Shown here: one piece after another, positions 1-46,240 of the stretch
Layout: every line of letters begins with the position of its first letter
Position numbering within the stretch: position 1 is the stretch's first letter
NCBI GenBank assembly: GCA_965202585.1
Contig: OZ241829.1
Coordinates: 24,490,001-24,554,000 of the forward strand
DNA from: Thalia democratica
Lineage: Eukaryota
DNA length: 64,000 nucleotides
Direction: 5' to 3'
Notes under the pieces: model-generated
What the model saw: only the letters and a program-made list of their open reading frames with translations
Told to the model about the DNA's origin: nothing
Databases searched by the model: none
Translations under genes and position numbers: made by a program

Positions 1-2323
1 TGTTACAAATCAAACATTTCAGTTTTCCCCTGCTCGTCATTTGCATTGGAAGGTCTGTACAAGCTGGAAATAAAATTAAAAATCAGTATAAAAATTGTAA
101 AAAAGTTTGTGGATAAATATTGAAAACACTTTACGTGTTCATTTAAGAGTAAATTTTAATTACCGATATTTGTTTTTTTAATTAAGAATCAAAAGCAGAA
201 ATAAGAGAAAATACGTCTTTAAAATACATTCCTAAATATATAATACAAACATAGAGAAAAATTTATAGTGATATGTAGTTTTACTTGAAAAACATCAGTA
301 AAACAACTAGATTAATTTTGTTAAACATTTTTATATATTCAGATAAAAAATTGGAATTTGTTAATTTTTTAGAGTGATACAGATAAACAAGTTTTGAGTA
401 TTCAAAAATGTTGAGCATAGTAAAAAATTAAACTAGAGCTAGTAAATGTATTAAAATGTCAATCAAATATAAATTACTACTAATAAGATAATCAATATCT
501 ATTATAGATTAGCCTACAGTATAGTTTTATAATTTTTAATCTAAATTAATAGCCCATAAATCTATGGTATGCTAAAAGAAAACATAATCTACTTCTTGAT
601 TACAAATTGCGATGCTTTTAGTTTTTAGTTTATAAACAATAACTAAAAAACAAACTTGGAGGTTTTTGCAAGTTTCTTAATTGGGACAGTGATATTTTCT
701 TATAACGGCGGGAAAACCAGTAACTTGGATGTTTAGGTTCCAACTTGGATTCATTTGAATTAGAGGTTGGCTGGAAAATAAGAACTAAATATAAGTTTTT
801 TTTTATAACTTGATGCAGAACTATTCAAAGCAGGTAAATCTCTTGTTAAAAGACGTAAGTTTTAGATTTAACATTTAATAATCTCTGGTTGAAGTTAAAC
901 AACGAAGTGCAGTAAAATGTATCATAAAGCTTCCTGGAAAAGACGTTAAAAGGTATCCGTGTGGTGTGCGACTCGATAACTGAAAGGTTTTTTCGTGCAC
1001 CAGGTCCTAGCACCAAGTATTTTGAATGTTGTTTTTGTCGTTCAATAAACTTATATATATCTTGTAAAAAAATTAAATATTTTTAAATTTACTTAAGAAC
1101 TAACTTAAAGCTTTTTCTCCGAAAACTAACATTAAAAACAAAAAACTTTTTGTTTTTATAACTTTGCATTGGCTGATAGAACAATTTATTCAAATAAAAA
1201 TGTGTGCCTCATAGCAATAACATGAGACTTCGTTTGTAAAAAATATTTTCACCGACATAAAGATTTTTTGATTAAACAGCTACTTTCTACAACTAATTTA
1301 CAAAAATATTAGTAGAAAAATTTGTTCTTTCCCAATATAGTTGATTTACAACTGTTTTACAAACCTTTTAACAAAAAAAATTTCCAAAAGAAGTAAAATA
1401 TGAAAAAATTGCCAATGAAGATACTTAATGAATACAACTTTAAACTTACTTCAATAACTACTGTACGAGTGGCTTGGGATTTATTTGGACCATTGTCGTT
1501 TGTGGGTTTGCTTTTTAAACTCCAACAACTATCGAAAAAATTAAAAGTTATAATAGCCTTGTTTAATAAAGTTTAGAATTTTAAGGTGGACAAATTATTT
1601 TTTAAATTGTTGGTATTTGTTTCTAATCTACATACCTGAATCCAACTTTCTCGAACAACTTATTTTCAAGCTTTAACTTGTTTCGGATATTTCTCTAAAT
1701 ATTGAAAAAAAAAATAAACCGATAAAAAACTATTAGAAATCATAAAAACACTAAATATTTTTTAGAGTAACTAAATAAAATATTCATACATTGTTCATCT
1801 AGTGTTTACTTATGAGTTTTAATCTTTATTGTTGAGGTTTTGTTAATGCGTATAAATTGTCAATAAACTTACTTTCCAGTTTGTACAACTTTTTTCTAAA
1901 GCCAACTTTGGTACTTTTTGCAGAATGTACTCGTCTATTTCTTCTACTTCCATGATTTTGTCCTCTGATGAAATTATGGCTTCTGAAATCAACTCACTCA
2001 GTTTAAATCCGCTCCATCGTTTTTTGTACATATCTTGGTAACTACGAACAGGCTTTTTGCTCTGACAAAGTTAAACTAAATCTAATACAGTAAGAAAGCA
2101 GTGTATAAGTCTTATATAAAATGCATAATAAAATTCGTTTTAGAATAAAGTTAATTAACAATTAAAAACTATGATTTGACTAGTTTTAAAATAAAATTTA
2201 CGGATCATAGCTACTTTTAATCCTTGGTAGTAGCAACGCTTAACACTTTATTTTTAATAAATATTGTCATTTATTTTATCTTTTAACAACTTGAAAACTT
2301 ACCTTTAATTTCAGAGAAGTCAT
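1..2323 (-). CDS. Divergent forkhead (winged-helix, FoxO-like) protein; 3' end beyond window start
   Basis: Exons 2323-2303, 2061-1873, 1694-1636, 1528-1450, 770-656 and 63-<1 join with GT-AG and matching phases (0,0,2,0,1), with no stop. Product: MTSLKLKSKKPVRSYQDMYKKRWSGFKLSELISEAIISSEDKIMEVEEIDEYILQKVPKLALEKSCTNWK|RNIRNKLKLENKLFEKVGFS|CWSLKSKP...RGKLKCLICN. This aligns by eye to the FoxO forkhead pattern WGNLSYADLITKAIESS..KRLTLSQIY...VP...GWK|NSIRHNLSL..RF.RV....SWW, including a phase-0 intron right after WK. Confidence 0.75.
931..1065 (+). repeat. Dispersed ~130-bp stem-loop repeat, copy 1 (in a forkhead-gene intron)
   Basis: agacgttaaaaggtatcc..ggtgtgcgactcgataactgaaaggttttttcgtgcaccaggtcc..gttcaataaacttatatata is shared with 5394-5528, 2913-2970 and (reverse) 59461-59555. 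Confidence 0.85.
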
Positions 2324-2912
2324 AATTCTAAGTTTTAGTTTTGCTAAAGCTAAAAAGTGTTTATTATATGTTTATAAGAAACGTTAAAAAACGCAAGGAC
2401 TTAGTCTATTTTATTTTTCAGATAAAATTTAACTACATTAACTTAAATAAAATTTACTTATGGTCAAGCTTAAAACTAATTTGGACTAAAAAAAACTTTT
2501 AGTTTTTTTTACAATCTCGTAAAAGATAAATTAAACTTTTTGATTTATAAACAGCTACATTTTCTGGTTTTAATTTTTCACAAAAACCTTAGTCCATTAA
2601 CTAAGCAGTTCATTATGAATGGTTCAACCAAGAGAAATTTAATTGATTGTTCTTCTAAATTTATTTCATGTTATATGAACTTTGCTTTTCTAAGGACCTC
2701 TTCAAGACTAATAGAACTCACATTCCATGAAAGTTTTGTCGTATAACATTTAGCTGTTTCAATATAGAAATTATAGTGATCATAAATCAGCCGTTTATTT
2801 CAAGAAGCTACTATGTTTGCTTAATAAATTTGAATCCAAACACTTTTTGATTATGTTAATCTCATTTTTCCCCTTCAAAACATGTCATTTTAGTATTTTT
2901 TTTGTTTAAGTT

Positions 2913-2970
2913 GAATGCGCTCGATGACCGAGAGGTCTTTTCGTGCATTTAGGTCGTAAAACTAAAGTAC
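2913..2970 (+). repeat. Stem-loop repeat, degenerate copy 3
   Basis: aatgcgctcgatgaccgagaggtcttttcgtgcatttaggtc aligns to the hairpin core of copies 1 and 2. Confidence 0.65.
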
Positions 2971-5393
2971 TTTTTTAAGCTTCTTATCGTTTTCGTTTTT
3001 TTTTTATTGTTAAATAAACATACAATGGTCTTTTGTATACATATTTTTAACTAGTTCATGTTTTTATAAGCCGTACAGAAGCTTTCGATTATTACGTCAT
3101 TTCAACTTTTAACAATTGAAATACTTTTTTTATGTTTTAGTTTAACTTTTTAATGGTCAGCATTCTTTTATATTCTTTTATACATAACAAGTCAAATTTT
3201 ATTGACAAAGCCTTTTGCGGGCATTCTTTTTTTATAATATGAAAAATAATCATTTACTTTTAACTTTTAAGAACTCAAAATTACAAAACTATTAGAATAA
3301 GCATAAATAAAATGAGTATACAACACATTGTTGGTTTTCTTATAACTATAAGTGCGGTAAATTTGTAAATCTTAAATAATTTAGGTCTGCAATTTAAAGT
3401 TTGCAGTTGAATTTTTTTAAATAATAGACCAATCAAACGGAGCGGGCCGTATCATAAAAAGTTTTTACTGAAGTTGCCATACCGAATGTAGTATGACTTT
3501 TTTTTTAATCATGTTGGTTCTTTTTGTTGTTGTTGAGATTATTACTAGAACTATTCAAGACGTTTCATTTACTATATAATTTGGTGTTATATAACCCTTA
3601 ACAATAAATTAAGTAGTTTAAAAATGTGTACAGTTTCTTTTTTAATACATAAGTTAAATCATATGATACACTAAAAGTTAAAAATTAAGTTAAAAAAGTG
3701 GCTATCAAATGCTCCTTTTTATCCAATTTTAAAACTTTAAATACAAACAAAAAATGTTTTTCACAGAGTTAAAACATCTAGTGTATTCTACAAAAGCACA
3801 TTTTTGCATGTTTTGTTTGTATCTGGTATATGGTAGAACGTAAATTACTTTGAGTAAAACAGTTATTCCTACTACAATATAGTAAATAGTAATAAATAAA
3901 TAAATAATAGTAAATTATGGAAATTCATTTTGTTTTAGTTTTTACTTTTAAATTATGAAAAAAAAACGGCAAACACTGTTTTTTTCTCAAATGTATTAAA
4001 AATAAAAATTTTAATTTTAGTGCCGGCAAGTATTCAAAAACATTTATTAGCAACTAAATTGTATTAAGGTTTGTTGAAAGTTTAACATGTGGCGATGGAT
4101 AACTGCTACTAAGATGCTAAAATGTTTGTACTTTTACAAAATCAAACGCAGTATTTAAAACTTAAAAATGTTTATAGCTCAAATAGAATGTGCTTAAAAA
4201 GTTTTTATTGCCATCATAATTTTTGAACCTTACCCTCTTAAATTCCAATATTTCAACGTTTTAAATGAAATTTAACATTCTCAACTAAAGTTTGTTTATA
4301 ACAAGCTTTCGCGTTTAGAAAACAATAAGCATATATAAGTATGTTTATAAACTGGTTTGTTTATAAATGCAGTGTATAATCGATGATTGCTTAACTATAA
4401 AATTGATGAAAATTTAGCGTGGTATTTTTAGTAGGGGGTGCGGAAAACTTTTAAACTTCTAAAAATTCCTTTACTTTAAAATTTTGTTTTGACTAGTTTG
4501 GTAACTTCGTTTACAAGGTTAACAAAAAATATTAGTTAATCGAAAAAAACGAAGCTACTATAGATAACAACTTCCTACTTATTTTTGAGCAGCTCCCATT
4601 CTGAAGAACTGAAGCTTTATTTATTGATTTATTTTTTCTATCTATCGATGCAACTTTAAGTTCGCTGGTTGAAGGTTTTTTCAAAACGACTACCATTCCG
4701 CATATGTCTCTCATTAATTGTATTTTAAACCTCGAATATACTCAATTGAAAAAAGTAGCAGGGACATTAAAATATCAAATAAAGATAAAACTTGTAAAGT
4801 CATTTTATAGACTCTGATGCAAATAAAATTATTTTTAACAAGCATAGTTCACCACTAGTATCAAAACAACTTTTTTGAAGTAAAGTTGTAGTATCTTGTA
4901 AGTAGTTCTCAGACTTGTATTTTTAGATGTGAGAATTTTTTTTTACTTAAATACCTTATTTTGTTGTGAAACTTTTTAGTTAAAATTAATTCATAATCGG
5001 CTACAACTCTAAAGTATATAATTTTCTATTTTATCTATTATAAAATGTAGGTCTAATTCATTAACAATTAAGCAAAAATTCCATAATTGGCTGAATATGC
5101 AGCTTTAGGATACAAAACTAAAAATGCTGTTTGCTAAATTCTAAAGTTGAAACTCAGCAGCTCTTGTGAGATTGAATATGTTTCTTTGATACAATGTGGC
5201 TAGTTGTTTTGCGTATTATATTGATGACCCTGTATAGTGTTTTCTTTTTGTAAAATCAAAGCTAAAAAGTCTAAAGCAATGAAAAAGCAGAATACTTATA
5301 AAATGTTATGTTTAAATACTTGCACCAACATTGACGAAGACCTTATTTCAACGACCGAAATGTGAATCCTTCGTACTGTACAACTTTTATAAC

Positions 5394-5528
5394 TCCCGGA
5401 CAAGACGTTAAAAGGTATCCAAATGGTGTACGACTCGGTACCCGAAAGGTTTTTTCGTACACCAGGTCCTTGGACTAAACTTTTTGAGCGCTTTTTTTCA
5501 CGTTCAACAAACTATATATATTGTAGCA
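5394..5528 (+). repeat. Stem-loop repeat, copy 2
   Basis: caagacgttaaaaggtatcc..ggtgtacga(5425-5433)..tcgtacacc(5455-5463)aggtcc..gttcaacaaactatatata; perfect 9-bp outer stem. Confidence 0.85.
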
Positions 5529-5989
5529 AAACGTTTAACATCATGTTTAAAACAAACTTCAAAGTGTTTTATATTTTAACATAAAGTTGTTCTAGAAAAA
5601 ACATGTGTACAACTTAAATCACAAGTCAGCCATCAGACTTTTTCAAATTGTTCTAAATTGTGTGAAAAAATTACCAGGTCACATGGTACAAAACATTTGT
5701 CTTAACTTTCTGGATCAAGTTGTTGAAAATATTTAATTTTTTGAAAAGCAAAAATAATGAAGGAAATAAAACGCTTTGCAATTGTGGAATAAAAAATAAA
5801 CGTCCCCTCAATAAAAACGCTTGGTAGAAAACGTTATATATCAAGCAAAAATCAGCTCAGTCAAGAAGTTGTTTAGGCTGTACGGGTGGCGCATACAAAA
5901 AAAGATGATACGACCACATCAGTGACTTGAAAATTTACAATTAAAACGGCACAGAACTGTCAAAATACATCTGGAAGAAAAAAAACAAT

Positions 5990-8920
5990 TTCAACTTCAA
6001 AATAGGCTGGGAAATAATTCATCACATTGGCGCGTTCTTTAACTTTCAAAAAAAAAATTTTGATCTTCCACAAAAAAAATCCTTGAAAAGTTATTATCAT
6101 TAAGGAAAATTAAATCTAGCTGTATAAACACTAACCAACAAGTAGAAGTGGCTGAAGCTCAAAAAGCCCTTGATGAAACGAAAAAGAGCTAGCAGAATTT
6201 TGAAGATCATGAGAGAAGCAAAGAATGACCTAAGAGCCATGAAACTAAATTATTAGCTTCTGCCAAATTAAATCTGAAGAAAACTTTAAAAAGTCTTTGC
6301 AAAGCTCTTATTAATCTTTAATTAAACCGCTTAAGGTTATAAGTGGTACCAAATTAGGAATAAAATAAATAAACATATATGCCAAAGATAAAAATTGCTG
6401 ACTGAATCGAATAATTTTTAACGAAAAAAGTAGAAGAAGAACAATCAATGAATAACAACTAGCTCATGAGAATGGCTCAACGTGATGTCTAAAGAAAAAA
6501 AAAAGTCTCATCATGGAAACACAAGCGTAAGATGAGCTTTATAAAAGAATAGCTCGAAAAAGTATCATTGGCCGGGTTCAAACTTACGCTCAAGCAAGAG
6601 TTGAGGCAGAAGAAAACACAAGTTTGAAGCTGAAAATTGCCAAAATTCTCGCTTCTTACGAAGTCCGAATAAGAAGATCATCAAGTAAATGGATGATAAC
6701 AGTTGAACTTTTGTATGAAAAACGGGTTCTTTTAATATGAAGCTTAATAAGAAAAGGGCGAAAAATCGACATGATGCCTCAAGAAATTAAATCAGAACAG
6801 CAATCAATCGACATGATACCTGAGCAAACAAAGATGAAATCTGTAGGAGCAAAGAAAGAAAAAGTGCGGAATGAAGAAGTGGTGCAGAAAGAACAAGAAT
6901 AAACAACTTAAACTCTGCGTAGCTCCAAGAAAATAAACAAATGGTTTGCACAAACGATGAAAGCCTCGGAGGTTGTTTCCATGCGCATCAAACTATTACT
7001 GACTCAGTTTTAAAATTTAATATATTTACAAAAATTAAGAAGAAGTTGCTGAGATGAACGATTCAAAAAGACTATAGAAAGATCAGGAAACACTAAAAAC
7101 CTGCAGTAAGGATATGGAAAATGACAATATAAAATTCCTTTTAAAAAATGCGGCGATGCAAAACAAAATCGAAAGTTTTAATAAAAAGTTAAAGGAAACA
7201 AACGAAAAAATTTTGAAAACGTTTATTGAGCAATCTATTTTAAATGAAGCAAGTAGTTATGAATAGGAAAGCAAGCAAAAAAGCCAGATTCAATAGCACG
7301 CTTAAGCAAGAGTATAGGCAGGATAACAGGATAAGGACAGTTTGAAGCCGAAAGCTATCGAAGCTCTTGCTGAAATCTAAATTGAAAAGCTAAAAAGAGA
7401 GATTTGTATCCAATAAAATACAACATAATTGTATTTATTAATAAAAGCTACATGGAGATCCGATGGTTTCAGGGAGAGATCTTAAATGCTGACAACGAAA
7501 ATGCACGGCACTCACTGCTGCGAATTTTTCCACGGAAGCGATTGATGCTCAAAATCAAAGAGCGTCAGATGAGTTTACTCGAGAAGAAGATCGAAAAACT
7601 CTCGTCTGCCAACTCCCAGCTACTGTGATTTTTTAATAGATCCCTCTTGAAAAATAAGCAAGAGAAAGATAAAACAAGAAAAGTAAGCTTAAAAACATAA
7701 CTTCAAAGTTATTAAAACTAATATTTTCCAGCTACTGTGGTAGCAGCAAGCGCTTGAGAAGGAGATTGCTGGAAGCTCTAGCAAGATCCAATGTAAGCTG
7801 AGGAAGAAAACGACGCTCTTCAAAATAAAGTTGAAAAAAAAGAATAGAAGGAAATATATTTTTTTTTTGTTTCTAGTTTAAAAAAGACTAAGCAACAAGC
7901 AGTTTATTTCTTAGACTAAGACGTTCTTGAGTTTCATCATGAGCATAAAGTGATTTTCCTAGAGATGAAAATAGTTTTTAACACTACCTCATTCCAATGA
8001 TGGAAAAAATCAAACGTTCTTCAGAGGATTGGAGTCTAGAAAATTGTTTATTCGAAGAATAAAAAAAAGCATAGATTTTTTTAGTTAAGTCATCTAGCTT
8101 CTACCTTCTCTATTCAACATGTTTATAAGATGTAAAAAACTTACAGGCTTTGTAGAAAAAAGCTTCATTAGTAAGGACCCTATAAGAAAAAGTAAGTTTA
8201 ATTAACTGTAATAATTTGTGAAATTTTCTTTTATAGTTGTAAAATACTCGTTCAACTATAAAAAAAACTAGTTTGAATAAACATTCAATGTAGAAGGTTT
8301 TAAAGAAAAATTGAACAATAAATAGTTGAGTAATACTCACTAACTCATTGTACGACAACTGTTAGCTTACATTTATTTCTCAATAGGTAATAAAATAAAT
8401 CAATATAAAGAAACCTTTTTTAAAGGTGGAAAAGTTGGTGTAGAAAAGGAGTAAAAATCGATATGACGTCTGAGCAAATAGTGATGCAATCAGCAGAGCG
8501 CAGAAAGAAGAAGAATCAACAACCCAAGCTCCGTGCAACTCCAAGAAAGCAAGCAAGAATGCTGGATTCAAGATAGAGTTGAGGCAGAAGAAGGTCAAAA
8601 ACGTCAGTTTAAAGCCGAAAGCTACCGAAGCTCTTTCTGCTCACGAAGCCCGGCTGGCGGACGAGGAGGAAGCTCATAAGACCAAATACAAAGATAATTT
8701 ACAATAATCAATTATAAAACTTTTTTTTAAACTAGATATAATGAAAATAGGCTTTATAAATGTATTTAGATTCAAAAGTTGAAAACAGAAGTGAGAGAGT
8801 TGAAGGAGAAAAACGAAAAGAGTGAGAGGACCAACAGCGAAGTGTTTGAAACGAACGACTCTTTGCTAGAAGAACGCGAGAAGTTTGAAAGAGTCTGGAA
8901 AAGAAAAATAAAGTTAATGA
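5990..8920 (+). pseudogene. Decayed coiled-coil gene fragments in repeated modules
   Basis: E/K/Q-rich reading-frame pieces broken by stops and frameshifts (e.g. MLKIKERQMSLLEKKIEKLSSANSQLL 7545-7628; SLKPKATEALSAHEARLADEEE ~8605-8670). The module caagagttgaggcagaag..agtttgaagc(c/t)gaaa recurs near 6595-6635, 7305-7355 and 8575-8620. Confidence 0.55.
7720..8390. repeat. Local segmental duplication, block A
   Basis: Colinear similarity to 9640-10535. Anchors: cagcta(c/t)tgtgg(t/c)ag(c/t)agcaagcgcttgagaaggagat, caagcagtttatttctt, ggagtctagaaa, gctttgtagaaaaagcttcattagtaa, tttgaataaacattcaatgtagaa, tagcttacat. Confidence 0.85.
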
Positions 8921-16514: not shown

Positions 16515-19500
16515 ATGAGCGAAGACAAGAACAAAAAACATACAGTCACCAGCCAAGTCAACATACAACTAAATTCTGTTAAAAGCAAAACAAGAACAAG
16601 CACAGTGCAAACGGCTAAAAAGGTATTTCAACCAAGCGAGCAAGAATCATCTTGCAGTGAACATGCTGGCAACAAACCAAGAACGAGTGAACCAGCAGCT
16701 TCAAATAAAATGAAAGCGAATTCAAATGAAACCCAAGAGGACGCAAGCTGGTACACTGGCCGTCGCAGCTCAAGCATAAAGATCAGCTCGAAGAAAGTCC
16801 CGCTTGCTTCGAAGAAGTCGATAGTTTCGAACGCAGTCAGTTTCTACGAAGGCTCGCCAACAAACAACGGTTCAAATAAAGCGAGGGTTTCTGGCCAGGA
16901 GCAAAAAAGCGCGGTGTGGTTTAGAAGGAATAGCAATTACGATAAGCTTTTGTCGAAATTTTCAAATAACTCAAAAGTAAGTTATGTTTTAATTTTATTT
17001 AACTATTAGTGTAAAGTTTTTTTTTTAATGTTAACTTTATTAGTTTTAATTTTTTTTAACTTGTAGTAAAAGTTTTTATTCAGAGTAGTACAATTTTTTG
17101 ACTTAAAACTTTTACAGATTGAAACACCAGGGAACAACTCTCAAAATTTACAAAAAAATAATCAAAAAGAAGCTATTATAAAAGAAAATAAATCTTTAGT
17201 GTCAACAGAAAAAAATAAATTTAACACTAATGCTAAAGAAAACTTTGAATGCGTTAATGGAACTGCTGAAGCTACAAAAAATCCAAACGAAGTAAAGTTA
17301 CGGGATAAAAACAATAAAGTTAACAACAACTCCGATCATCGTATTTCGAGAGAAGATACTAGGTTAGCATCTGCAATTTTTTCAAGACCAGGTCTAGCTA
17401 AAAACTGTGCACGTAGACTTAATAGACCTAAATCGACCGAATTCTCAGTCAGAAATTGGGTTAATGACAACTCTAACTTAGCTGTTTCTACTTTAAAAAA
17501 GATAAATCCAAATCCGGCTGTAAACGTACCCCGTGACACAAACTTTACTCTGACTAAAAATAAGTTTGAAGTTCATCCAAATACTAAGAAGCCATCAAAC
17601 TTGAAGCCCAGTAATAACCCGTCCAAACGTGCGGATCTTAACAAAATTAACCCAAGAAATCCAGAGTCTTCTAACTTTACATCGACATCTAATCGAATTC
17701 TCCTAGATTCATCAAAACAAAGATCTTCAAAACTTCCATATCCACCTAGACATTTAGAATTAATAGCAGTTGAAAAAAAGGAGCCATTAAACAATGTTTC
17801 AAGATTTTCTTTACAACCAAAACAAGCAGAGTTTAAACCAGTAAAGTTTATAAGTCCAAGATCTTCTAAAAAGCAACAGCCTTTTCTACCGAAAACTGTA
17901 CCACCAGAAAATGACTGTGCTGATCTTACAAACCAGCCAACACCACTTGGGTGTTCAAAAGCTTCCAAGCCAGTAACAATACCCAGCCGACCAAACAACA
18001 ACCAATTTTCCGCCGCTTACTTTCAGGAAAAAGGTTCCTGGAGCTCGCTTTCTCCCAACCCTCCGTTCCCATTCAAACGATTTCAATCTAAATTTTCGGC
18101 TTTGAAGAAAAAAGAAGACGCAAAAGATCCAACGCCATCTGGATCGCATGAAGAAGCTCTTCGTTCGAGTCTCCGATCGGTGCCGAGGCCTTCGGAACCA
18201 ATAAAGGTACCATCTGCGGTAAGAAATTCTAAAATAAAGCAGTCCGTCACGCCGCCGACTCCTCCCACTTTGAAAGGGAACGGCGCTTTTTCGGAATCCC
18301 CGTTTTCAACAAGAACCCTGTACCCGCCTTTGTCTGAAAACCTCCTTGTGACACCATCATCACCTGTATTTGTTCGCGAGGAGTCGAAAGCTTCGCCATA
18401 CAGGTATCCCTCGGTTAGCGCGGCGGCTCCGGAAAAGCTGAGCGTGATCCACGCGAACCTTCAGCTGGCGCCGAAAACTTCACACATCAAAAGTTCCGGA
18501 TACGAGAAGGTTTCATTCAAGCCGAGGTTTTCCAAGATGAACGATCCTGGATTCGAGAACTTACCGGTTGCAGCTGTAACTTCTAACTTGAACGATCGAG
18601 CTCACGAAAACATACCTTTAAAACCGAGAGATTCGATCTTGAACAATCCAAATAACAGAAATCCTTTTCCACCAACAAACCAATCACTACCTCAAAGACC
18701 CACACAGCTGCCAATTTCAACCATATCGGATCGTTCATCGACTAAAATGCCCAGTATAACTTTAAACAAAAACTTGGAGCCTTTTGCAGCTGTAACTTCA
18801 AATTTGGACGATCAAGCGCACGAAAACATTCCTTCGAAGCCGAGAGATTTAAGCTTGAACGGTTCAGAAAAAAGAAATCCTTTTCCATCAACGAACCCTT
18901 CACCGCCTCAAAGACCCACACATCTGCCAATTTCAACCATACCGGAGTCAACTAAAACGCCCAATAAAACTTTAAACAAAAACTTGATACCCCCTCCCGT
19001 TGATACCCCTAACTTTGAGCCACCATCGCCAATGATACCCCCTCCCCCACAGCTAAACACCCCGCCAACGGGGATTCCCCCTCCGCCGCCCCTGAACACC
19101 CCGACAACGGGGATTCCTCCTCCTCCGCCGATCACCCCCGTCACCCCTTCCGCGAGGAGAAAGGTTCCGGATGAGCGGTTGTGCGCGCTCCCGTCACCCC
19201 CTAAACAGAAAGTGAAGCGTCACGTGACTTACGAGCAGGTGAAGAGGACGAGGAGCCGGAAGAAGGGAATGGAGGAGTTCAAGGAGCACGACCACCACAA
19301 GTGCCGCATGGAGTTTCAGAGTTCCGATCTGAAGAAGCTGCAGTCGCTGGTGCCCGTGCCTGAGCAGCTAAGAAAACAAGTTGTGAGTATTATATTAATT
19401 CTTCATTTTGCTTTTGTTTATTATTCATACTTTGTAAATTTTTTAGAAACATTGTAGTCTGTTGAAATTTTTTTAATGTAATCGTTATATTATACACTAT

Positions 19501-45429: not shown

Positions 45430-46240
45430 TCAGAGGTGAAATCGACAAATAGACAGGCGGGCACTTCTGCTAATTTCTTCTTTCTGATGGTCGAACACCG
45501 TAAACTCATACCGCCCTTCAGACAAAGTACGGACTAATACAACCTTACCGCCAATGCAACAGACACCGTCCTCTATGTTGCGAATCCTGCGTTCACCAAG
45601 CCTGTGGTTGATCAGACATGCGGCTTACACAATCAAAAACTTCCCAGGTGTAGTCGGAAGATCCACCGATCGCAAACAACCTTTTGCCAAGACCCGCGAT
45701 GTTGTGAACAATTCTTCTTGTTGTGAACGATTCTTCTCGACGTCCAACTATTCTTCTCGTGGTCATAAACCTCGACAGATTTCAATTTTAAATTTCGTTT
45801 TAAACCACCGGAGATTGTGATTTTACCTTCATAGACCGTGCTTGCTGCGAAATACCTCTCCGCCTTCATACTCGTTACTTGACTCCATTTGTTAAGCTCG
45901 AAGTCGTATTTCACGCAAGAGTTTACAGGGTAAGTATTGTCGGTTATTCCGCCTAGAACATTCAGCTCGCTCTTGAAGGCACAAACGCTGAAGTAACGCC
46001 GCTTATCTGGAAATGAGTCGCAAAACTCAGAAAAGCTGCTGGGAAGCAAGTTCACTGACGTCAAGTAATCACCCATGCTAGATTTTGAAACCACGTAACT
46101 GGTTGAACTATCCTGGGAACTTTCAGTCGAAGCTTCTTTTGTCAGCTTGAAGAAACCCACTTTGCGAAGCCCGCCGTCGTGCTCTAAAGTGTTGATTATG
46201 AAATGACGGAATCAACTCCTTCCTTGTTACACTTTCCTCC
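45430..46240 (-). pseudogene. Intronless Kelch-repeat pseudogene fragment
   Basis: Kelch GG/Y/W motifs: ELNVLGG..SCVKYDFELNKWSQVTSM..RYFAASTVYEGKITISGG..SVEVYDHEKNSW, then in other frames RLFAIGGSSDYTWEVFDCVSR and VCCIGGKV. About four frameshifts, one from a 19-bp tandem duplication (45701-45719 / 45720-45738). Confidence 0.85.

Follow-up and report, generated by a model that had tools for sequence, protein, structure and literature searches.

A lineage-restricted, FoxO-like forkhead gene with a changed recognition helix and a putative C-terminal zinc finger in Thalia democratica

Few DNA-reading elements of animals and fungi are as strongly conserved as the recognition helix of the forkhead (Fox) domain. 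To our knowledge, the known changes in Fox specificity (FKH versus FHL sites) have all taken place with the N(S/A)IRH motif of this helix intact. The Asn and His of the motif, N54c and H58c, usually make the only direct hydrogen bonds to bases in Fox domains (PMC8501956). Here we describe a gene of Thalia democratica in which both positions have changed. It lies on the minus strand at the left edge of a stretch of 64,000 nucleotides (nt) of genomic DNA (contig OZ241829.1, positions 24,490,001 to 24,554,000), referred to as the window throughout. The sequence comparisons presented below make it probable that this gene encodes an orphan Fox protein that is derived from FoxO and confined to one lineage, recognises DNA in a non-canonical way and carries a zinc finger at its C-terminus.

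Among all solved Fox domains, those of the FoxO proteins (FOXO1/3/4, DAF-16) show the best sequence similarity to the domain of this gene. FoxO proteins carry the signature AWGNLSYADLI before helix 1, where other Fox classes have KPPYSY, and in human FOXO1 an intron is placed exactly after WK. FoxP proteins have a finger and a leucine zipper on the N-terminal side of their forkhead domain. No other well-known Fox class pairs such a domain with a single C2H2 finger (PMC7789814). Clade II Fox genes have introns within the forkhead at conserved positions (PMC9539403), and FoxO shares the conserved site of its forkhead intron with certain other Fox families (PMC2908143). Some orphan Fox genes confined to one lineage have acquired further domains, e.g. 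fox orphan-3 of Owenia fusiformis, which has gained RING and RAWUL domains (PMC9539403). Furthermore, Fox domains and the globular domain of histone H1 are highly similar in architecture (PMC8501956). A limited search of the literature, which is no proof of absence, yielded neither a forkhead domain without the helix-3 Asn and His that is under purifying selection, nor one with a C2H2 finger on its C-terminal side, the Fox repertoires of salps and tunicates included.

The gene is read on the minus strand, with window coordinates descending from 2323 to 1, and the base composition of the 64,000-nt window is 71.5% A+T. Six segments with AG acceptors and GT donors form one continuous frame across positions 1-2323:

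2303..2323, minus strand: exon 1, an ATG and six codons (MTSLKLK) followed by the donor GTAAGT; from the in-frame model
1873..2061, minus strand: exon 2, basic N-terminal arm, helix 1, helix 2 and the loop between helices 2 and 3 (H2-H3 loop) up to NWK, followed by a phase-0 intron
1636..1694, minus strand: exon 3, recognition helix 3 (RNIRNKLKLENKLF) and strand 2; ends in phase 2
1450..1528, minus strand: exon 4, wing 1, which is short (SCWSLK), and the beginning of a linker; from the in-frame model
656..770, minus strand: exon 5, linker carrying the conserved block KHPSYWFSRRYK; from RNA contig record 1
1..63, minus strand: exon 6, cut by the window edge; ...PPTCTDLPMQMTSRGKLKCLICN, read as the N-terminal half of a C2H2 finger

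The joined product reads MTSLKLK / SKKPVRSYQDMYKKRWSGFKLSELISEAIISSEDKIMEVEEIDEYILQKVPKLALEKSCTNWK / RNIRNKLKLENKLFEKVGF / SCWSLKSKP...VVIE / PTSNS...KHPSYWFSRRYK...LQKPP / TCTDLPMQMTSRGKLKCLICN, with 116 codons in exons 1 to 4, and the visible protein ends inside ...RGKLKCLICN. The visible exons of the window copy contain no stop, no frameshift and no broken splice site.

Our analysis confirmed that this is a genuine, expressed and spliced gene. Three DNA sequencing runs (from two organisms) and one marine metatranscriptome contain the stretch and were aligned to window positions 1-6000. An RNA contig of 195 nt (record 5) passes from 1959-1873 directly to 1694-1636 with 0 mismatches, and a second of 861 nt (record 1) passes from 770-656 to 63-1 with three mismatches in all and extends about 635 nt past the left window edge. 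As two introns are thus absent from RNA contigs of the same species, the gene must be transcribed and spliced. Exon 1 is covered by none of the same-species RNA contigs aligned to this region. Spliced transcripts of a relative that is about 85% identical (L003 and L004) contain every junction between exon 2 and exon 6, those of exon 4 among them, and a complete open reading frame (ORF) with its stop. In addition, a spliced metatranscriptome product of 128 amino acids (aa) from a relative (P0001) begins with MTSLKIK joined to SKKPV, which supports the tiny first exon. The DNA depth of the exons resembles that of the flanking unique sequence, indicating a single-copy gene, and no second copy was found in the whole 64-kb window by tblastn with the relative's protein.

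A preliminary description of this DNA, made from its letters alone, had proposed that six exons join in frame although the ORF track shows only one. Both points hold: the GT-AG exon model and the RNA junctions agree with the former, and ORFs of at least 60 aa include just exon 2 (1843-2031). It had also named RNA junctions as a check, and same-species RNA shows 1873/1694 and 656/63. Its implied start of exon 6 at 54 has to be corrected, however, since RNA contig record 1 places the acceptor at 63. The other in-frame AG at 54, nine bases downstream, was rejected because the RNA contig joins 656 to 63. The acceptor at 63 adds three in-frame codons (reading PPTCTDLPMQM), in agreement with PPTC in the relative's mRNA.

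Helix 3 of the encoded protein reads RNIRNKLK (codons 1694-1671, within exon 3) where FoxO has NSIRHNLS. WK precedes it and is continued by RNIRNKLKLENKLF. In the HMMER alignment, exon 3 falls residue for residue on WKNSIRHNLSLHSKF of FOXO1, and the register, ...NWK RNIRNMLKQENKVF on ...GWK NSIRHNLSLHSKFI of FOXO1, is anchored by the pattern W-K-x-x-I-R-x-x-L. The positions of N54c and H58c are occupied by Arg and Asn in the window (R-N-I-R-N), while the most distant relative has I-N-I-R-S (L002); the N(S/A)IRH recognition motif of forkhead domains is absent. The consensus over four lineages is NWK[RI]NIR[NS][KM]LKxENK[LVM]F, in which the Ile-Arg core and the Leu are kept and the canonical contact positions vary (R/I and N/S) between invariant neighbours. 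The rewritten helix pointed out in the preliminary description, with both Asn and His gone, is therefore not peculiar to the window copy but conserved in its relatives. Charge is segregated along the protein, with about +5 in the N-terminal arm, about -5 in helices 1 and 2 and about +5 in helix 3, and the isoelectric point is 9.7-10.

The assignment to the Fox family is drawn from profile, sequence and motif comparisons. Pfam Forkhead (PF00250, curated cut-off 27 bits), the profile named as a check in the preliminary description, matches the spliced proteins of the relatives (about 85% identical, 84% over exon 2) above its cut-off, namely P0001 with 39.4 bits (E = 6.8e-10) and the L003 ORF with 36.7 bits; the window's own protein was represented in this comparison by exon 2, whose match (E = 6.7e-4) also goes beyond chance. 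Of the 100 clusters nearest to it in a feature search of the protein atlas, 91 were forkhead clusters. A phmmer search of the PDB placed FOXO1/3/4 at all ranks from 1 to 10 (E = 1.1e-4 to 5.7e-4), the next classes being FoxL2 and FoxN3 (E = 0.011-0.016); FoxN1, FoxP1, FoxG1, FoxA and FoxK also follow, all with E >= 0.011. Helix 1 carries AI.SS..K as in FoxO, and before it the relatives have RWG.FKLSELI, which shares the W-G with FoxO and resembles the FoxO signature given above, but not KPPYSY. Where FoxO has Tyr in LSY, the family has Leu. A phase-0 intron lies directly after NWK inside the forkhead domain, again as in FoxO; because this site is common to FoxO and some other Fox families, its position is no proof of FoxO descent. 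With these results, the claims that the domain is FoxO-like and that both its scaffold and the intron position after WK are kept, the latter now seen in the gene model and in an RNA contig, are borne out. By sequence, the forkhead domain is most like that of FoxO and belongs to the intron-bearing clade, and the most likely origin of the gene is as an offshoot of a FoxO-type, clade II gene in a marine planktonic lineage.

There are, however, clear differences from FoxO besides helix 3. The HMMER alignment with FOXO1 shows the H2-H3 loop to be shortened by 3 residues and wing 1 by 4; an H2-H3 loop that is probably longer than that of generic Fox domains is, however, shared with FoxO. Unlike FoxO, the gene lacks Akt/14-3-3 sites, a basic wing 2 and any FOXO-TAD or KIX-binding region, and its product, of only about 200 aa, has a putative C2H2 finger as its C-terminal end. 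In detail, a regular-expression search for the Akt/SGK pattern RxRxx[ST] found none in the visible window protein or in the relative's complete ORF, as could be expected from the preliminary description, in which the N-terminal Akt site of FoxO was not visible; only 17-24 residues precede helix 1. Pfam gives only Forkhead and weak zinc-finger matches for the relative's ORF, with no FOXO-TAD or KIX-binding region.

FoxP membership was considered and rejected, given that the finger lies on the opposite side of the domain from that in FoxP and that a zipper cannot be made out by eye. The gene shares the WK before helix 3 and the short wing with FoxP. Its finger, however, lies at the extreme C-terminus and a zipper is not apparent by eye in the translated protein. 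FoxP keeps N-A-[IV]-R-H, and the PDB similarity to FOXP1/2 is weak (E = 0.056-0.43). Like fox orphan-3 of Owenia fusiformis, the gene is fast-evolving, taxon-restricted and hard to class, and has gained an extra domain; it differs from that gene in that the partner is a C2H2 finger and in that the recognition motif has been replaced, with the replacement under purifying selection. The likeness to the globular domain of linker histones H1/H5 consists of the winged-helix architecture expected of a Fox domain (PMC8501956), a basic helix 3 and a weak profile match; unlike in these histones, there is no long Lys-rich tail, the exons and motifs are Fox-like and the profile score is far lower. Linker histones were rejected as the primary family, with 13.3 bits (E = 0.1) compared to 39.4 bits for Forkhead (both for P0001).

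The putative C-terminal zinc finger is seen in part in the window, which shows the CxxC half only. In the transcripts of the relative (L003/L004), KLKCLICN continues with RIYVLERNFKLHMKYKHSN and a stop, and the complete ORF ends with ...RGKLKCLICNRIYVLERNFKLHMKYKHSN-stop. The finger pattern CLICNRIYVLERNFKLHMKYKH is present in this relative and is followed by four codons and the stop; its finger, CLIC-NRIYVLERNFKL-H-MKYK-H, corresponds to CX2CX12HX4H (CX2CX3YX5FX2HX4H) with the usual aromatic and hydrophobic positions. Searched against the PDB, the relative's tail gave weak best matches, all of them classical C2H2 fingers (SALL4, ZBTB20, ZNF410, CTCF). The KCLIC pair of Cys residues had been taken as the possible opening of a zinc-binding module, and in the relative's transcript the C2H2 pattern is indeed completed. 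The whole protein of about 200 aa thus consists of an N-terminal arm, the forkhead domain, a linker of about 70 residues and one putative finger. Within the linker, the block KHPSYWFSRRYK is identical in the window and in the relative of about 85% identity and matches no known domain.

To identify relatives, an exhaustive phmmer search with exon 2 as the query was run against 1.84 billion representatives, of which three proteins matched. Word-indexed searches bring the public family to seven protein entries, all from ocean metagenomes or metatranscriptomes; with P0001 and P0005 as queries they returned family fragments only and no full-length annotated protein. Metagenome contigs gave no match by the scan with the family peptide pattern or with a DNA pattern of exon 3. 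On the nucleotide level, three genomic contigs of a sister species (L001, L005 and L006) are 86-87% identical to the window overall, L007 is genomic DNA of the L003-type species, and L002 comes from a much more distant genomic relative (69% identity) which retains the exon lengths of 59 and 79 nt. This distribution, restricted to a few relatives from ocean samples, together with a Forkhead score above the cut-off, agrees with the lineage-specific Fox derivative proposed in the preliminary description.

Conservation follows the exons. In the comparison with the sister species, exons are 94-100% identical and introns and flanks 79-91%. In detail, exon 1 is 100% identical in L001 and L005 (non-coding flanks 83-85%), exon 2 is 94% identical to L001 (adjacent introns 83-86%), and exon 4 is 96% identical to L001. 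Exon 3 is 59 nt long in L001, L002 and L003 as well, and exon 5 is 84% identical to the L003 mRNA. The ratio of nonsynonymous to synonymous substitutions (dN/dS, Nei-Gojobori) is 0.15 between window and L003 (dS 0.57), 0.26 between window and L002 (dS 1.03) and 0.21-0.28 for the remaining pairs, i.e. 0.15-0.28 over all pairs. Together with the higher identity of exons than of introns, these ratios establish that the coding sequence, including its changed helix 3, is under purifying selection.

Structure prediction with AlphaFold on shallow family alignments reached a mean predicted local distance difference test score (pLDDT) of 45 when the full-length protein was modelled and of 52 when only the domain was. 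Helices 1 and 2, a short H4-like helix and helix 3 were predicted at the expected places with pLDDT of about 60; a wing was not predicted. When the first of these low-confidence models was compared to the PDB with Foldseek, the top 50 matches were all Fox DNA-binding domains, with FOXO1 first, probabilities of up to 0.98 and, for most matches, a root-mean-square deviation of 2.1-3.1 A over 50-61 columns. The models are consistent with a forkhead core but are not independent proof of it.

From these data the following mode of action may be suggested. The protein is probably a small, basic, nuclear winged-helix protein, whose basic helix 3 and N-terminal arm (about +5 each) would still be presented to nucleic acid; from the conservation of this basic surface, we argue that nucleic-acid binding is probably retained. 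As the base-reading pair is gone and its positions are variable in the family, canonical reading of RYAAAYA is unlikely, and the sequence points to altered or lost RYAAAYA binding. Without the base-reading Asn and His, the protein would probably not be a canonical RYAAAYA reader; it might bind DNA or chromatin with a changed specificity or, in the manner of linker histones, with little specificity for sequence, and the C2H2 finger could provide a second contact with DNA, RNA or protein.

Several observations weigh against a FoxO-derived orphan protein with a changed recognition helix and a finger. Exon 2 alone scores only 20.2 bits (E = 6.7e-4) with Pfam Forkhead, which is below the cut-off, and the FoxO ancestry is deduced from similarity ranking and motifs, not from a tree. 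Both AlphaFold models are of low confidence and comprise the helical core only, and the Foldseek E-values are all >= 0.13. The finger reaches just 14.6 bits (E = 0.048) with Pfam zf-C2H2 (PF00096), whose cut-off is 25.2; its second half is known from no more than two transcripts, which are nearly identical and come from one sample of a relative. By our own positional count, its helix has Leu at -1 and +6, an unusual choice for a finger that reads DNA. With its seven protein entries, the family is also very small in public databases. In addition, the gene seems to be in trouble in the sister species. The contigs L001, L005 and L006 are 98% identical to one another, and all three have lost the GT donor of exon 2, which is GC in L001 (L001:1726-1732) and GA in L005 and L006; the latter two, from separate assemblies, moreover have a 1-nt deletion in exon 2 in common. 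The lost donor and the deletion suggest that the gene is dispensable or decaying there, and these contigs probably represent a decaying gene, a recent pseudogene or segregating null alleles.

This raises the question of whether the gene as a whole is a dying pseudogene, an evolutionary leftover that is transcribed and spliced without a function and whose odd helix 3 reflects nothing but decay. The frameshift and GA donor of L005/L006, the GC donor of L001, the low word depth of the gene in the metatranscriptome (5-8) and the rarity of the family in databases would all be accounted for. The window copy, however, is intact, dN/dS stays at 0.15-0.28 in every pair, including those with dS of 0.57 and about 1.0, the 59- and 79-nt exons are retained in the most distant relative, and the changed helix 3 is nearly identical across lineages instead of randomly different, all of which makes such a leftover very unlikely. 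On the other hand, an intact protein might still be a sequence-specific factor reading FKH or FHL sites, with the conserved Asn at helix position 2 and the Arg compensating for the lost Asn and His. In favour of this, the scaffold as a whole has been retained together with the Trp residues and the Ile-Arg core, and it is known that Fox domains can rearrange their helix-3 contacts for variant sites and that less conserved Fox regions also make essential DNA contacts (PMC8501956). We nevertheless regard this possibility as improbable, as both residues that make direct base hydrogen bonds (PMC8501956 for the contacts) are replaced, the canonical contact positions are variable in the family while their neighbours are invariant, and the LSY motif ahead of helix 1 has exchanged its Tyr.

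More weight, although still well short of an even chance, is given to the idea that the protein does not read DNA at all but is a linker-histone-like chromatin binder or a protein or RNA module, with the finger serving protein or RNA contacts. The similar architecture of Fox and histone H1 globular domains (PMC8501956), the weak secondary match to Pfam Linker_histone (13.3 bits, E = 0.1), the Lys-rich helix 3, the variable contact positions and the Leu residues at -1 and +6 of the finger would fit, whereas the Forkhead score of 39.4 bits against 13.3 bits and the lack of a Lys-rich tail of the H1 type do not. Going beyond an orphan Fox protein of FoxO descent with non-canonical recognition, one may tentatively propose, as a bolder version that we consider possible but doubtful, that in a conserved family of small proteins from pelagic tunicates a FoxO-derived winged helix without the otherwise near-universal Asn/His readout recognises, together with the C-terminal finger, a new kind of target, which would be a novel DNA motif contacted by a composite forkhead-finger surface, or else chromatin or RNA.

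If this were true, the gene would represent a natural experiment in which a forkhead domain has gained a new specificity. With about 200 aa, an expressed protein whose forkhead domain has both base-contact residues replaced and is kept under purifying selection in several lineages is a compact test case for whether and how the forkhead scaffold can be retargeted and for what a single C2H2 finger adds. It also illustrates that small, intron-rich regulators in the AT-rich genomes of tunicates are missed by automated annotation at the ORF level. Should it turn out to be no more than a peculiarity of one lineage that binds weakly or not at all, its interest would be modest.

At the 5' end of the gene, the transcripts of the relative point to one further feature:

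2602..3036, minus strand: probable alternative upstream non-coding exon, from the L003 alignment; spliced straight to exon 2 in the relative

Positions 6-400 of L003 align to window 3036-2611 with 72% identity and then run into exon 2, and the boundary of the upstream exon in the window was set by the GT at 2601-2600. In L003 and L004, the stretch joined to exon 2 differs from exon 1, and the 21-nt exon with the ATG is skipped. Since P0001 starts with the micro-exon and L003/L004 start with the upstream stretch, the relative makes at least two 5' forms. In the form with the long upstream exon, the first in-frame ATG sits just before helix 1. The 5' junctions of either form are covered by none of the same-species RNA contigs on window 1-6000. 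The upstream stretch (about 2602-3036, minus strand) may represent an alternative first exon, or else transcription reading through from a unit further upstream. A contig of the RNA run (record 6) is colinear with positions 2399-2912 at about 93% identity.

Of the other features of the window, one lies within the gene but outside the protein:

932..1051, no strand assigned: high-copy interspersed repeat of about 120 nt, inside intron 4

Its word depth in the DNA runs is about 3-4.5e5, with 80-450 in the flanks. No tRNA-like or Rfam match was found for it, and the Rfam and tRNA scans of the region were empty. A second copy of the repeat is located at 5394-5513, and a related fragment near 2915-2960 falls within the putative upstream exon, for which the relative has transcripts. 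Further away, an open frame of 752 aa at 17199-19457 (plus strand) coincides with the only G+C-rich island of the window (G+C fraction 0.48 compared to about 0.27) and has no Pfam match at E <= 0.001. Finally, a large exon with Kelch repeats (Kelch_1, E = 9.7e-18) at 45636-46160 (minus strand) belongs to an ordinary neighbouring gene.

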